From Magallana gigas (Eukaryota), in assembly GCF_963853765.1 (NCBI RefSeq), contig NC_088858.1:12834001-12898000 (forward strand): DNA of 64,000 bases. The letters run 5' to 3'. The position numbers and the translations under genes are program-made. Numbering within the stretch: position 1 is the first letter of the stretch; each line of letters starts with the position of its first letter. The notes below the pieces were generated by a model. The model saw only the letters and a list, made by a program, of their open reading frames with translations. It ran no database searches and was not told the origin of the DNA. This document shows, one piece after another, positions 37,991 to 45,467 of this stretch.

Positions 37991-38921
37991 AAAATTGATT
38001 ATTATGAACATTTTGAGATGTCTGCAATCCTGAAATAACCCAAGAACATTGTTTTATTTACTTCGGAGACCGTATATATAAACACTGCCACTTTTTTAAA
38101 TTTGCTTTTCATAAAGACAAATTGAATATTAACAAACTAAATATAATATATCAATTGCAGATCAACGATTAAAATGTATAAACTGACGATTGCAAAATAT
38201 ATATGCAACTTTAAATATACCCAAGTTTATTGAAACTGACAAAAAAATCAGAGGAAAATTTGTTATAAAATGAGATTTAACTCATGTGCACTATTACAAA
38301 GTTACATTCGGAGACTAATTCTTAATATTTAATTTGTTTGTCTTTTAATGTGTCACTTTCTTTCCCAACATAGTTACACGCATGCTTTTCGCCATGACCT
38401 TGACTGGCACCAAGCTTAGAAATTTTAGTTCAAGGTCACTACAAATCCCAATCCTTTAGACAGTCCTTTTGATTAAGTCTGTACTGTGTCCATAGATATG
38501 TAACGTTATACATGTATGTCTATGCTGTGTCTAAAGGAAAGAATTGGCTCTATAATGATTTTCAAAGAGATCTGTCGCTGAGACCTTCACTTTTGACAAA
38601 ATTAGTATATAGGTTCAGAACACATCCTCTCCTATCAATCTCTCACCAGAGGGCGTATTACGCTGCGCTACAACACCTCTGTTAACGTCTATATGCCAAG
38701 AATTTTCGCAAAACCCATTCTCAATCATGATAATATGTTTTACGGTGCTACCGTTCTTGCGAGCGCAGCAAGAATTACACACACCTTGCATCTTTGTCAA
38801 CTTATAGTTTTATTTAGGTATCAACGACCGTCAAAGAATTTTTGAGAGAGTATTGCTCTACAATAAGTGTGCTAAAGGTACTAATTTTAATGGTTATGAT
38901 ACATACAGCGCAACCCCCTTC

Positions 38922-38923
<2 letters not shown>

Positions 38924-38961
<38 letters not shown>
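38924..38961. repeat. (GA)n microsatellite
   Basis: Perfect AG run. Confidence 0.98.
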
Positions 38962-38963
<2 letters not shown>

Positions 38964-39955
38964 AGCCCGGTACCAGTTTGTAGGTGTGTAATTTCCCACT
39001 TTTAGATTTAATAGTCTGACTTTACGCAATATCTACATAATTTTTTAACTGTTTATTTTTTCATTTTATTCCTTTTTATTTATTTCAAAATGTCCTATTG
39101 TTTATTTCCTCCCTACTCATGCATGCACAATTAGCTTAAAAATGGATCGCATGCCAAGAAATGCCGTCCGGTTTAGAATAAGCCTAGCTAACGGTCTTCA
39201 ATTATACACTTAATTAAGGTCAGCCGCATTTGCTTGAAAACCCGCAATAAGGGATCGAGCCGAACTAAAGTTTCAGAGATTTGGGTCAGCGGCTGTTTAC
39301 GACAGTCTTTAGAGTGCCAATGTTTATAGCTTAGAGATACGTGTTGGGATAAGAATAAAAAGGACACAAGCTAAGATTTGGAAGACAGACACTTTGTAAT
39401 TAAAAAAAATAATTATGTGATTTTCCTCTTTTACTTATTCATCGTCTCCATATTGTTTACACTTAGAAACACAATCTCTAAGAATTATTTCTCTCTGAAA
39501 TACAGAATGTTATGTTTTGTTTGGGTTTTTTTTTTTTATAAACCTAGCATTTTTTAAAAAATTAAGCCGATATACGTACATGTAATATTGATGTACGTCA
39601 TGTAAAGTGTTAAATACACGGGTATCTTTTTTGTTAAGAGAGTTTTAATTAAGGTATGGCTAACTAACCTTGTATTAAAGGAACTGAATAAATATGAAAT
39701 ATTCAATCGGATGTAAATGTATGACCACCGCAGGGTTTATTATTATGCGATGTTTCATATAATAAATGTTACATGAAAGTTTATAGCGTTAATTTTTAAG
39801 GTATGCTGTAGAATGTATATAACACTTTTTTTATTGTTAGTTTTGAATATATTTCGTTAAACAGACACTGCACCGATCAATTATCTGTATTGGTGGGAAA
39901 TCCGAAATGCAAAAATTCTGGTAAACCGGTAAAAACTAAAACAAAAGTTGTAAAA

Positions 39956-42900
39956 ATGTCGAATTTTTTTCGACCATGGGTGGAGACACGGCCGGCTGTA
40001 CCTGTGCATAGACGTGTAATGTTGCCGTTGAATAACAACATGCAGGTACGTAACTACTTGTTTATGGATGATTCATAGTGTAGGTGATCAATACATTAAA
40101 GTTACCCACTCAGTAGAATGATAACTATAGGCTATATTTTAGCAAAAAATTAAGCCGAAATACTTATATAGTGAATATGCAGAATTTATATAAAAGTCAA
40201 TGTACGTGTATTTGACAAATTTATGTTGATATTGTATGTCATGTCAGTTATTCAGTGAAGCTTTATAATTTTTTTAATTTTTATTTCACATGCATATTTT
40301 ATTGCAATAGGACCACAATGATATGGAAAATAAGAAAACTCCACGCAAAGTAAAAGGATTTTTTGAGCTGAAACATTCTCAAAGAGGAGAAAGGAAAAGA
40401 AAATACCAAAGCGCTTTTCAAGAAGCTTCAAGCTGTGTTCACAGTGATATTTCCTCCATCAAAGTCCAGTTCAATTTTGATAATGGACATGTTTTATCCT
40501 TTTTTCCCCGCAAAGTGTCCCCTGATGAAAATGCTAGTTTGGAAGATGAAGGTGTTAAGAAATCTCAAGACCTTGCTGTAATTCAACAGGTTATTGCAGT
40601 TAAGGACAAGTTCAGAATTTCTGACGAAGCTTTACATGAACTTCATATGATTGGTTCAATAATACCAAGCAAGTCAGCCATCAATACAGAAAAATACCGT
40701 CTCAACACAACTCTTGAAATAATGAGCCATCCAACAGTAAGTACATGTACCGTGCTTTTTTATGTGTTGACCACTGACTTATTTAGCACGTTTTATTATC
40801 TTATCATTTGAATATCAATTTTTAGAAACCGATCGATCATAGCACAAGCCAATTTACTTTTATTTATTTTTTTAACAAAGGCAGACTGCAGTACTAGAAA
40901 GCTAGAGCACATTCTAGAGTTTGTACTTCAACACCAAAAATACCAGAAGTATATTGAGAATGACACTGTTACCCTGCGTTTTTCCTGTGATGGTGCCAAA
41001 ATTGCCAAAAATATCTCCTCAGTAAGAGGGGTGTTCAAGATTTTGGCACCAAGACAGTCATTGCCAGATAAGCTTGAAGATTTGAGCATGTGTCCGGAAG
41101 ATGAGTTTACTCTTTTCTTTTACATTGGTGAGAAACTTTGTATTTATTGAAATTTCCTGTCATGTATTTTGGAATTATTATTTCGATTATCACATGTTTA
41201 TTTCAATTAAGGAGATGAAAATCGATGCAGTTTAGAGGAATATGCCTCTGGGACATTAAGAGACATGGAAAATGTTCAATTGAATGGAATTGTAATCAAT
41301 GGAAGAAAAATCTCTGTAAAGTGGTAAAGTTATCTCATCATCTACGGTTATCGTTTTTTTTTATTCTATACCCTATTTGTTATTATAATATCATTTCAAA
41401 TTCTAAACTGGTACAATTATATATTTTGTAGGATAATGACTTGTGATTGGAAGGCACTTGCCTTACTGAGGGGAATTAATGGCGCTCAATGCGAATTTTT
41501 CTGCATGTGGTGCCACTGCTCCAAAAAGCAGATATGCGATTTCAGTAGTAAGTAACTGTTGTAAATTGATAAAATGATACAAACATTGTAATAAAAACAA
41601 TAGCAATTGCTGGACAACTAATGTGATTTTATAATGTTTTTTGTAGTCCCATCTTGGTTGATACAGAGATCTAAAGAAGAACAACAAACTGTTCTAAATT
41701 CTGAAAAGAAAACGTTCGGGTACAAAGATACAGATCTCTGCCCTTTCATTTCATACCATGACATGCCCATTGATGATCTTCACATGCGCATAAGGATTTC
41801 TCTAAAGCTCTTCAATCAGGTACATTGTCTCTTATTAATATACACGAATGTATACTTTTAACGACTCTGCTAACTATCTGCATACACAAGATCTCATTGC
41901 TTGATTTTGACAATTTTAAATTCAGCTTGTGACCTGGGCAATAGACCAGAAATCTGAAGACAATTTGAAAAGAGAACTGAAACGCGTAGGTGTCAGTTTC
42001 AGAATGTGGGAGGAAAGGGGGGATGACAAATTGAACACCAAAGTGAGGAAATGGTCTCAACCAACAGGTATATATATGCCTTTCTTTAAAAAAAAATACT
42101 ATAAGTGTTTGCAGTTCTTGTAGCAAATCTTCTGAAAAATATTTGCCATTTCATTTGTAGGTGATGATTTACGTAAAATTATAAGAGACGTTCAAATCCA
42201 TCATATTCTGGACAATAAAAAGGACAGGCACTACGTATCAATAGAAAGCCTTTCAGTACAGCAGTTGAGGGACGAATTAACTAACAGACAGCTTTCCAAA
42301 AAAGGAAAAAAACCCGAGCTTGTAGCCCGATTAAAAGATGCTGTCGGAAATAACACTAAGGTATATTTACAGAAACTCAAATTCACTGAATAACATTTAT
42401 ATTTCCTGAATGTTTACATAGTAATATAAAACTTTTCATTCATGTTGTTTTAGATGAGGAGGAATGTAGGCTCTCGTCTTCAGGTATCGTACGACTTTTC
42501 AGAAGATGAAGAACAGGACCTGGACGTCGCAGCCCTGCAAGATCTGTGGTCAGGTTTCCATACGCTCATGGAAAGTCTCCGGGCATTACCTGGAACAGAT
42601 AATTACAAAGATATGGAAACTTTTGCAAAAGAAGCAAAGGAATGGGCCACTGAATTTCGAAAGCAAACCTTCGATGAAGATGTTATCCCATACATTCATG
42701 GTGTGTAAAAATGTTAAAGATTCTATAAAGGAATCATACAGCCTATCCCTACTTCTTTCAGGGTATAAAATTCATTTTGTTTAAATTACATTTTCAGCTA
42801 TGGTTTATCATGTACCACAGTTTCTGCAGACATACCACTACATACATGATATCGGGGTTGCCCAAGTTGAGCGTAAAAATTTTGACCATCGTCAAGCGTA

Positions 42901-43167
42901 CTTTGGAAGCACCAACAGAAATGGGTCCAAATGGAAAAAACATGTCTCAAAGCAGGTACATACCATTATTCAGATAGTCAATCTGCTTGATTTGTTTCAC
43001 AAATTTTTCTGCCTTCTGCAATGAATAATTAATCAAAGATAAATATGCATTTCAGTCCTTGTCATACTTGTGATCTTTAATTACAGATTCTTGAGAGGGA
43101 AAATAGAATGCTTTGGTCCAGTCTACATGGAACTGTACGTGAAAAAAGAAAATATGTAAAGTCTTAA
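39956..43167 (+). CDS. RAG1-core/Transib-like DDE transposase with internal SAP domain (~663 aa, 11 exons)
   Basis: Exons 39956-40045, 40311-40736, 40881-41127, 41212-41323, 41432-41547, 41647-41819, 41926-42067, 42161-42360, 42454-42700, 42798-42955, 43087-43167; all GT-AG, in phase, no stops (1992 nt). Motifs: TVTLRFSCDG, MTCDWKALALLRGINGAQCEFFCMWC, PIDDLH, TGDDLRKII, PYIHAMVYHVP, QVERKN. From memory these correspond to RAG1 VVVKESCDG, GYDEK...CTLC, IDALH, NGNFARKLM, NYFHKTLAHVP and GNESGN. Confidence 0.85.
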
Positions 43168-44845
43168 ATACCGTCGTTTAGCTACAGTCCCAGTAACCAT
43201 GTTTCTACGAGACCTCGTAAAAGTTACGTGAATCCAGGATGGACCACGAACATACAGTATTACAGGGTCACATAGCTGTGGTCGGTTCTCCTCAGCATCT
43301 TTCCACGTGCATCTAAACAAAGATTTTTATAATGAAGCAGATCTTTATTATTATCAAGCAATATTTATTAAGAAGCCCACAAAGATGAACAAATATTGTA
43401 TTTCTATGTATAGAAATGTTGTTTTGTTATATTAAAATAATATTGTATCACACTTTTGATATTATTGTTATTGTTTTTACTATTACAATTAAGTAAATAA
43501 TGTATAAAATTGATGTTCCTTATTGCAATAATATTGTATCACACATTTGTTATTATTATTGGTTTTTTTTAAATTAAGTAAATAAACATTCACATTGGAT
43601 TAAATTTATATAATCATACCTTTTACAATTATTGTGTTGGTATTGCTTTCTCTCCTTATATCCCCACCAGACATGAATAAACTCTTTGAAGGAGACAAAT
43701 GTTTCTGTTGATGTTTTGTAACATCTATTTGACCAGTTCTCTCCAATGGCAGAAGTCATTTCTTCACCTGTAAAAATAAACATAAATTACTTAACAATTA
43801 TTTTTAGTAACCGAACACTTGCATTCCAAGTATGTCTTTCAAGATACCTCCTGTCTCCACTTGCATGGGACCAAAACTTTAAATAGACTTGTCATATGCT
43901 CAAGAAAACAATTATCATAATATTGCTTCAGATAGTTCATTACCTGTGAGGTAGAAATCCACATTTCCATTGTCTGTTGGCAGAGTATCCATCAAAGACC
44001 TGAAGTATTTATTAAAACTTGCACAAGAAAAAGGCACTTTCACTGTTGTCCTCGACTGGATGCCTAATGCACCATCAGGTGTACGGCGTGCATCGCCTAA
44101 ACTGTCAAAGATGGCCTGTCGCAGTGCCATAATGTCATCAGGGTTGTTCCTGCAGTCTATTTTGTTGGAATCTAAATTCCTGCGGTGAAGATGACAAGAG
44201 AGGGGGTTTCCTTTATTTCTTTCAATGAATTGCTGCAATTCCTGGTTTCCATCTAAACTGACCCAGGTTGATGGTCCCTCCCAGTCCTTCCATTTTACTA
44301 GCACTTCTTGCTCCCTCCTCTCTAAAATGTCTTCAATCTCCCATAGTTTCTGAGATAAATTGTTGAGAATAGTTTAAAACATGAATGATTATTCTATTAT
44401 TGTTTTTCTTAATTAGTTTGGATAATTCATAATTTTTCCCGATGTAGGATATTCGTGATCTAAGAGTGGCGCTAGATCCGCCTACACACTTTGACTGAGA
44501 TTTGTATACCTGCTTCAAATAAATATAAATAATAGAATATAGTTCTAAAATACACATAAAGGTAGATCAAAAGGGAACCCTAACGATATTTAACGATCGC
44601 AAACCATAATATATACATAGATATGTCTATACATATTATAAACATCATCAGGGACTTGTACTATGATTATTACAACTATTCTTAGAAATGAATATGTTAC
44701 AAAAGTTTAAATGTAAGTATATACGATATTTGTATAATAATATTTACCGTACCTCTTTCGACTTGTTTTCCTTTAAACTTCTAAAATTTAAATTTTCCTC
44801 CCAATCTCCGAATCTTACAGGGGCTCTTCTCTTTCTCTGTGCCAT
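43123..44845 (-). CDS. Chromodomain-containing protein (~278 aa, 4 exons) convergent with the transposase
   Basis: Exons 44845-44753 (MAQRKRRAPVRFGDW.., NLS-like), 44349-43944, 43767-43620, 43312-43123; phases 0/1/2 are consistent. Chromodomain KLWEIEDILERREQEVLVKWKDWEGPSTWVSLDGNQELQQFI, followed by an unrecognised ~190-aa domain. Confidence 0.8.
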
Positions 44846-45158
44846 TTCTTAGATAAGAATGCAGCTGAAGAAAGCACACAGGGAGCTCGATTTCACTTAA
44901 TCGGTTCATCGCCGTGGTAACGCTGACCGCCTGGGATGTGGTCACTAATTTATAACGGGGTTGTGAAAGCGGAATATTGGAGCAGAATTTCTTGGCATGA
45001 TATGACAGTAAATTATGGCTCTTGCTGATATATATACATAAAATCTCTATATTAAAAAAAATTAAAAACAAATCATACGTCAATGAGGCAGGTACCGCAG
45101 TCTATACTGAAATAGCTAGTACACGCATTACAGATGTTTGATCCACCTCTAAATTTAT

Positions 45159-45193
45159 CGCGGGAAATATAGCGCGAGTGCACTGTGACGTCA
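45159..45193. promoter_or_regulatory. Candidate POLD2 / bidirectional promoter: E2F site and palindromic CRE
   Basis: GCGGGAAA (45160-45167), TGACGTCA (45186-45193), AG|GTATGG donor at 45242 (probable 5'UTR exon), second TTTCCCGCG at 45445-45453, acceptor TTTCAG at 45780. Confidence 0.6.
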
Positions 45194-45467
45194 TCCATGA
45201 CTTTGTTCGTCTTTGTTTACGTTTCTCGACTCAATACAGAGGTATGGAAGCATGTAACAAATCTTTTGAGTCTCGCCAAAGCATATGCGGTACTCAAAAC
45301 GTGTCTTCAAACTTTAAGTCACTGTAAATTACGAGTTAAAAGTCGGCCATTTTTGGCATAGCACCACGGGTGAAAACATTAGAGAGCATTATGGGACGTA
45401 GACAAAAAATTTTGTTTGATGAACTGTAGGTTTAGCTCGTTCTTTTTCCCGCGCACACTGGTTCTTA

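Follow-up and report, generated by a model that had tools for sequence, protein, structure and literature searches.

The oyster Magallana gigas carries, on the forward strand of a 64,000-nucleotide stretch of DNA (assembly GCF_963853765.1, contig NC_088858.1, positions 12,834,001 to 12,898,000; hereafter the window), an 11-exon gene for which a preliminary description, made from the letters alone, had claimed the catalytic Asp-Asp-Glu (DDE) triad and the zinc ligands of RAG1. The locus thus raises the question of what kind of gene this is, and whether it belongs to a transposon. Very probably, it encodes the transposase of an autonomous, low-copy and recently mobile cut-and-paste DNA transposon with two genes and a RAG1/Transib-type core. 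New here is an intact, expressed and polymorphic two-gene transposon of the clade of RAG1/Transib and the CACTA, Mirage and Chapaev (CMC) elements, with atypical ends and no target-site duplication; no description of this element was found in the literature searched. Positions are those of the window, and the features of the element are collected in Table 1.

Two sequences on other chromosomes match exon 3 of the gene (40881–41126) at 99% identity, and more distant paralogues are present as well. When 20 kb around the copies are aligned, a sharply bounded unit is obtained, the window copy (on chromosome C6) being 97.2% identical to the copy on C7 and 99.3% identical to the copy on C8. These three, on three chromosomes, are the only full copies in the assembly. 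They are referred to as lineage 1, and all three retain the complete reading frame and all splice sites. A second lineage on chromosome C3, about 55–60% identical, has the same ends and a matching opposite-strand partner gene just downstream of the transposase gene, while the left end is also found in a third lineage, a truncated one on C1. The 13-bp inverted repeat that bounds the unit, with R at position 7, also terminates the C3 and C1 lineages. The block located about 42–60 bp from the right end is possibly a second transposase-binding site.

Genome-wide, the 13-bp end is barely enriched, with 46 matches against 15 in the control, and a large family, or many miniature derivatives sharing this end, was rejected on this count. 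Five exact end motifs on one strand, spaced by about 7.4–8.3 kb, are present in G000:C9:461103-491721, in what looks like a tandem array containing the motif by chance. The C7 and C8 copies contain non-coding insertions of about 1.1 kb (at window-equivalent 39300) and about 0.37 kb (at 44746–44749), respectively. The truncated C1 copy (G000:C1:55316927-55319200, L042:2028-4269) is 83–98% identical to a 692-residue protein, P0045, the full-length form of this third lineage being seen solely as transcripts from other samples. That P0045 might be the product of the C3 paralogue was considered and rejected, as it matches the truncated C1 copy and so belongs to the third lineage. In the window, the sequences flanking the element (38900–39149 and 45000–45200) are a high-copy host repeat, with hundreds of candidates at 87–95% identity.

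The C6, C7 and C3 copies are each located inside other high-copy repeats, and uninterrupted paralogues of their insertion sites are available: seven for C6, three for C7 and five for C3. In all of these, the sequence runs on across the insertion point without a gap and without CATG, with ...GGATCG|ATATGA..., ...GATAAA|CCTAGT... and ...AAAATG|TTCGGC... as the respective junctions. Because the empty sites read straight across the insertion points, the target-site duplication is 0 bp and insertion is precise in all three testable insertions, which come from two divergent lineages. A hidden duplication, including one in which CATG would be the duplicated target, was rejected, the empty sites being without CATG; no target consensus is visible at the insertion sites. 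Transib elements are defined by 5-bp duplications and CACAATG ends, in which CAC is invariant (PMC1131882), and protostome RAG-like (RAGL) elements invariably have 5-bp duplications and CAC (PMC7204232). A preprint reports duplications of 5, 3 and 2 bp and variable termini within Transib, and argues that such traits should not override transposase homology (10.64898/2026.08.26.747230); a duplication of 0 bp would be a further extreme.

The ratio of non-synonymous to synonymous substitution rates (dN/dS) between lineage-1 copies is 0.19–0.28. For the window and C7 copies, non-synonymous changes account for 8 of the 16 differences (P = 0.007 in a test against neutrality), with an identity of 99.0% in coding and 95.9% in non-coding sequence. 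One public DNA run covers the element fully, while another DNA run of the same study and organism has a depth of 0 across it. An RNA run and a DNA run each contain a left-end flank that differs from the flanks of C6, C7 and C8, and two more runs, labelled as the same organism as two runs with the element, contain almost none of its sequence words. Absence is here judged from assembled contigs, which are better at showing presence. Together, these observations indicate that the element is recently or still mobile and not a fixed domesticated gene. The preliminary description had proposed recent activity or purifying selection; both hold, given three intact copies, the low dN/dS and polymorphism of both presence and insertion site.

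When the window letters are read with GT-AG splicing, the exons of the transposase gene form a single open frame of 663 amino acids. It had been claimed that all exons join in frame without stops across ten introns, and the claim is borne out by this frame, by joints in RNA and by a near-identical RefSeq protein, "uncharacterized protein LOC105327491 [Crassostrea gigas]" (P0042), to which it aligns without gaps and with 3 mismatches in 663 residues (99.5% identity). Among public RNA-seq contigs, one of 2,708 nt has eight junctions listed as GT..AG joints. It resumes at 43084, and pieces also flank 42955>43087, a junction outside the joint list shown. Intron 1 is kept in this contig and removed in a second one (L038). 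A set of spliced Logan contigs from one series of public runs (L036–L041), presumably transcripts, comes from a source copy with two internal deletions, corresponding to window 40576–40901 and 40962–40999 and with non-canonical borders; its remaining reading frame has 441 amino acids and starts at M223. Some samples thus express an internally deleted copy.

The codons claimed for D209, D297 and E609 are located exactly where they had been placed, and the CMWC and HAMVYH motifs are present at the positions given in Table 1. The spacing between the residues is that of RAG1 D708/C727/C730 and of H937/H942/E962, and the two aspartates, CxxC, HxxxxH and the glutamate are present with identical spacing in six of six full-length family members examined, from oysters, Mytilus and a gastropod. 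When the family is aligned blindly by MAFFT to 13 RAG1-like proteins and a Transib-like one, D297, K299, G306, C316 and G355 are invariant, and the columns of D209, C319, H584, H589 and E609 are at least 90% conserved. With spacing conserved throughout the family and such columns in a blind alignment, the pattern is more than chance. In the PDB alignment of a RAG1-like protein (RAG1L P0054) with mouse RAG1, numbered as chain index plus 258, the counterparts of D240, D351 and C370/C373 are D600, D708 and C727/C730 of the mouse protein, and the HxxxxH...E block corresponds to H937/H942/E962. Through these RAG1-like residues, the equivalence of D297, C316/C319, H584/H589 and E609 with mouse D708, C727/C730, H937/H942 and E962 stands as proposed. 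The equivalence of D209 with D600 is probable rather than proven: D209 is the sole invariant acidic residue on predicted strand beta-1, at its end, and mouse RAG1 has the same SCDG motif at S598-C599-D600-G601. For the zinc ligands, conservation and RAG1 spacing agree with the role claimed, but such motifs are clade-wide and not specific to RAG1 or Transib (PMC12730594). The N-terminal basic motif that had been likened to the nonamer-binding domain (NBD) aligns at zero confidence only, in a region where the predicted local distance difference test (pLDDT) score is below 50, and this part of the description is not sustained. The SAP domain in exon 8 scores 44.9 bits with its Pfam model, PF02037 (E 8e-12), above the gathering cut-off of 23.9.

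HMMER, run with exon 3 against the whole sequence library, and two subsequent word-indexed searches reveal a small, mollusc-only family, whose members are 86–99% (oysters), 63% (the 692-residue lineage, P0045), 54% (Mytilus), 59% (Mercenaria) and 35% (gastropod) identical to the oyster protein; relatives in other oyster genera are at 86–88%. The gastropod homologue (P0014) is without the SAP insertion. All members are named "uncharacterized" or "SAP domain-containing". For comparison at the profile level, a bona fide RAG1-like open reading frame (ORF) of the same genome was used to collect 47 RAG1-like proteins, 24 of which were profiled. Against these 24, hhalign gives a probability of 89–91% and E values of 9e-7 to 2e-6, and pairs D297, CxxC and HxxxxH with the RAG1-like second catalytic aspartate, CxxC and HxxxxH. 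E609 is paired with the RAG1-like catalytic glutamate in a relaxed hhalign run (mact 0.05) and in the MAFFT alignment. The family matches a single Transib-like protein (P0097) with an E value of 9e-4, and single-sequence comparisons give 0.17 for oyster RAG1L and 0.09–0.23 for CMC sequences. Identity to RAG1 and RAG1-like cores is only 12–19%. Protein-language-model neighbours include RAG1 clusters at 0.89–0.90; the top neighbour, DUF1280, is not present in the genome and was not used.

An AlphaFold model calculated with the 13-sequence family alignment (pLDDT 48.9) has the predicted order beta1-beta2-beta3-alpha-beta4. D209 closes strand beta-1 in the predicted models, and D297 follows directly on beta-4. 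The top 46 Foldseek matches of this family-only model are all RAG1, BbRAGL or HzTransib (best E 3e-7), followed by Hermes at 0.017. A second model reaches a pLDDT of 56.9 overall and of 70–91 at residues 180–400 and 520–600; the N-terminal 110 residues are unmodelled. Exhaustive comparison of the second model with VIA gives a Z of 19.8 for mouse RAG1 (362 residues at 4.7 Å, model residues 116–612 against RAG1 459–966), 19.1 for BbRAGL, 13.5 for HzTransib, 10.6 for the P element and about 8 for ISCth4 and Hermes, with unrelated non-transposase folds at 6.6 or less. Foldseek and VIA thus match the models to both RAG1 and HzTransib, a result qualified by low pLDDT in the first model and by partial circularity in the second.

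A second gene is encoded on the opposite strand. The N-terminal part of its predicted product shows a weak resemblance to chromodomains (Pfam Chromo E 0.18; LHP1 chromodomain E 0.28), and language-model search gave no usable named neighbour for this protein. The partner of the C3 lineage is 43% identical to that of lineage 1. The coding sequences of transposase and partner overlap tail to tail by 45 nt (43123–43167). The 3' regions of the two genes overlap beyond these coding nucleotides, and their mRNAs could pair in antisense.

Table 1. Features of the two-gene transposon, in window positions.
Feature	Position	Strand	Remarks
Complete transposon copy, lineage 1	39150-44999 (5,850 bp)	.	extent shared with the C7 and C8 copies
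Left terminal inverted repeat, CATGCCAAGAAAT	39150-39162	+	perfect 13-bp inverse of the right end
Right terminal inverted repeat, reverse complement of CATGCCAAGAAAT	44987-44999	-	
Subterminal block, about 42-60 bp from the right end	44940-44958	-	nearly identical in the divergent C3 lineage
Transposase gene	39956-43167	+	11 exons, 10 GT-AG introns, 663 amino acids
Transposase exons 1-6	39956-40045, 40311-40736, 40881-41127, 41212-41323, 41432-41547, 41647-41819	+	
Transposase exons 7-11	41926-42067, 42161-42360, 42454-42700, 42798-42955, 43087-43167	+	
RNA-backed junctions	40736>40881, 41127>41212, 41323>41432, 41547>41647, 41819>41926, 42067>42161, 42360>42454, 42700>42798		2,708-nt contig
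D209, proposed first catalytic Asp (SCDG)	40989-40991, GAT	+	end of predicted strand beta-1
D297, second catalytic Asp (CDWK)	41445-41447, GAT	+	invariant column; RAG1L D351 = mouse D708
C316-x-x-C319 (CMWC)	41502-41513	+	D297+19/+22, like RAG1 C727/C730
SAP domain	42241-42342	+	exon 8, between CxxC and HxxxxH; Pfam PF02037
H584-x4-H589 (HAMVYH)	42697-42811 (42697-42700 + 42798-42811)	+	split by intron 9 (42701-42797)
E609, catalytic Glu (VERKN)	42869-42871, GAG	+	H589+20, like RAG1 H942 to E962
Partner gene, 4 exons, 278 amino acids	44845-44753, 44349-43944, 43767-43620, 43312-43123	-	RNA joints with CT..AC ends

Several observations weigh against a transposase with a RAG1/Transib-type core. 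At the sequence level, Pfam RAG1 models (PF12940, PF26100 and others) give no match up to an E value of 10 with the exons, the full-length P0014 or the partial P0018, SAP alone being recognised; the locus is absent among the PF12940 matches of the genome; and sequence queries of the PDB, made with one exon, one full-length relative and a three-sequence profile, return SAP or noise only. The aligners put D209 three residues upstream of the column equivalent to D600. The family-only model is poor (pLDDT 48.9), and with VIA its Z of about 9 for RAG1 is no better than helical-bundle noise. In the second model, the helix containing E609 has a pLDDT below 50, and the alignment used for it held RAG1-like proteins, so that its fold match is partly circular. 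If the absence of Pfam and PDB matches besides SAP were taken at face value, the D/D/E, CxxC and HxxxxH residues might resemble RAG1 by chance, in a protein that is no RAG1-like nuclease. This is barely credible, given the RAG1-equal spacing, the retention of the residues down to molluscan relatives at 35% identity and the invariant columns of the blind alignment; the hhalign E value of about 1e-6, the specificity of the Foldseek and VIA matches for RAG1 and Transib, and the placement of D209 and D297 on the predicted beta1–beta4 order argue in the same direction. It is also very improbable that the gene is a domesticated, immobile host gene with its frame kept by host-level selection. Ten introns, expression, a dN/dS below 1, relatives at 86–88% in other oyster genera and annotation by the National Center for Biotechnology Information (NCBI) as an ordinary gene would agree with domestication. 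However, the unit has perfect inverted repeats and sharp identity boundaries, its three 97–99% identical copies are located in different contexts on three chromosomes, two of them inside other repeats, and the same ends surround a lineage that is only about 55–60% identical. The element is moreover absent from some individuals and has other flanks in others.

More serious is the possibility that the family belongs on the CMC side (Chapaev, Mirage, EnSpm-like), or forms a separate deep branch, and not to Transib/RAG, the RAG1 matches reflecting the availability of solved structures and deep profiles. The termini, CATG...CATG, would fit this. Many introns are typical of EnSpm and would fit it too. 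According to Kojima (2025, PMC12730594), EnSpm/CACTA, Mirage, Chapaev, Transib, Plavaka, ESTA, Lanisha and RAG1 all have the C(2)C and H(3-4)H motifs as well as CA..TG termini, which are thus clade-wide; ESTA transposases, too, are sent to RAG1 by HHpred (PMC12730594). As a control, five oyster CMC ORFs with Pfam Transposase_21 matches were profiled. The family matches this profile with an E value of 0.009, with D1, D2, CxxC and D..H in register, while ten random five-sequence RAG1-like profiles range from 2e-6 to 0.026 around a median of about 0.008. RAG1-like and CMC profiles of equal depth thus score about alike, and membership of Transib is tentative. RAG1L itself has no detectable match to the CMC profile (E 0.9), whereas the oyster family matches both. 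On the other side, the full RAG1-like profile reaches about 1e-6, three of the ten five-sequence subsets give 4e-5 or better, and a single Transib-like sequence gives 9e-4, against 0.09–0.23 for single CMC sequences. The structural match starts at RAG1 residue 459, also for the family-only model, a position in the RAG1 modules that precede the RNase H fold. The N-terminus is not cysteine-rich and contains neither a Chapa domain nor a RING zinc finger, there is no Pfam Transposase_21 match, and a 0-bp duplication also misfits the 2–4 bp of CMC elements. A place on the CMC side or on a separate branch is thus unlikely, while far from negligible. The family falls within the CACTA-Mirage-Chapaev-Transib clade and leans to Transib/RAG, and may bridge Transib/RAG and CMC.

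Other elements of both kinds are present in the genome. Bona fide, intronless RAG1-like ORFs of 1,015 amino acids (Pfam RAG1 276–286 bits) are located at G000:C2:53473763-53475607 (L035:1136-4183) and G000:C9:44605801-44607645, the C2 locus (L035) having a convergent 328-residue ORF downstream. These are RAGL-type elements, distinct from the 5,850-bp transposon, and degraded copies are found at C6:37.21 Mb and C10:22.20 Mb. The CMC/EnSpm-type Pfam Transposase_21 has at least 37 matches in the genome (e.g. C1:60399089, C10:25763662 and C1:73637608), many in open frames of 600–1,028 amino acids; long-frame CMC elements are thus common.

If the gene is a transposase of the RAG1/Transib type, its 663-residue product would consist of an RNase H-fold DDE domain with a long helical insertion, containing a C2H2 zinc site and an extra, DNA-binding SAP domain. 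D209, D297 and E609 would coordinate the catalytic metals, and C316/C319 and H584/H589 would hold a structural zinc, as in RAG1. Bound to the terminal 13-mers, the enzyme would cut out the element and insert it anew. As no target site is duplicated, integration would take place by strand transfer at directly opposed phosphates, that is, with zero stagger, or by another joining route. The partner protein may have a role in transposition.

In Transib and RAGL, the known relatives of the element, the ends are CAC and the duplications nearly always 5 bp long. By its different ends, lack of a duplication, SAP insertion and different accessory gene, the oyster element widens the known range of the RAG1-type catalytic core, and an apparently still active system becomes available for asking how the geometry of target joining is set. 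The element may also serve as a bridge between Transib/RAG and CMC transposases. A survey of transposons across molluscs found a single Transib element (PMC10294476). Proteins of the present family go undetected by the Pfam RAG1 models and are annotated only as "uncharacterized" or "SAP domain-containing". Tentatively, and with more doubt than confidence, the element could be seen as the founding member of an undescribed, superfamily-level, two-gene lineage between Transib/RAG and CMC, in which a zero-stagger transposase with a RAG1 fold is combined with a chromatin-reading, chromodomain-like partner, as an independent parallel to RAG1 with its PHD-bearing RAG2.

When compared with known systems, the oyster protein resembles the core of RAG1 and RAG1L (mouse, PDB entry 4WWX; amphioxus BbRAGL, PDB entry 6B40) in its DDE triad, its C2H2 ligands and their exact spacing (D+19/+22, HxxxxH, H+20 = E), and in a predicted fold that is collinear from RAG1 residue 459 to about 966 (Z 19–20); a convergent second gene is also shared. 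Unlike RAG1, it has no N-terminal zinc-finger/RING region or demonstrable nonamer-binding domain, and it contains the inserted SAP domain. The gene differs in having ten introns, and its 278-residue partner is chromodomain-like and not a RAG2 with kelch and PHD domains. The ends start with CAT (CATGCC...) instead of CAC, and the duplication is 0 bp instead of 5 bp. With Transib (HzTransib, PDB entry 6PQN; PMC1131882), the oyster element shares an essentially core-only transposase of about 650–700 amino acids and a very low copy number, as well as the fold (Z 13.5 for HzTransib) and the profile match to a Transib-like protein (hhalign E 9e-4). However, its ends are without the CACAATG heptamer, spacer and A-rich nonamer, the third base being T and nonamer-like blocks being absent at both 12 and 23 bp, and it has two genes instead of one, a SAP insertion and no target-site duplication. 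CMC elements (CACTA/EnSpm, Mirage and Chapaev; PMC12730594) have multi-intron genes in common with it, as well as 5'-CA..TG-3' termini and the C(2)C and H(3-4)H motifs; termini and motifs occur in Transib and RAG1 too and so do not discriminate. In contrast to the oyster element, they duplicate 2–4 bp, and the oyster protein has neither a Chapa domain nor a Pfam Transposase_21 match. Spy elements of the PIF/Harbinger group (Han et al. 2014, cited in PMC12730594) are, like the oyster element, eukaryotic DDE transposons with precise insertion and no duplication. Their transposase is of an unrelated superfamily, and they target AAA|TTT sites.

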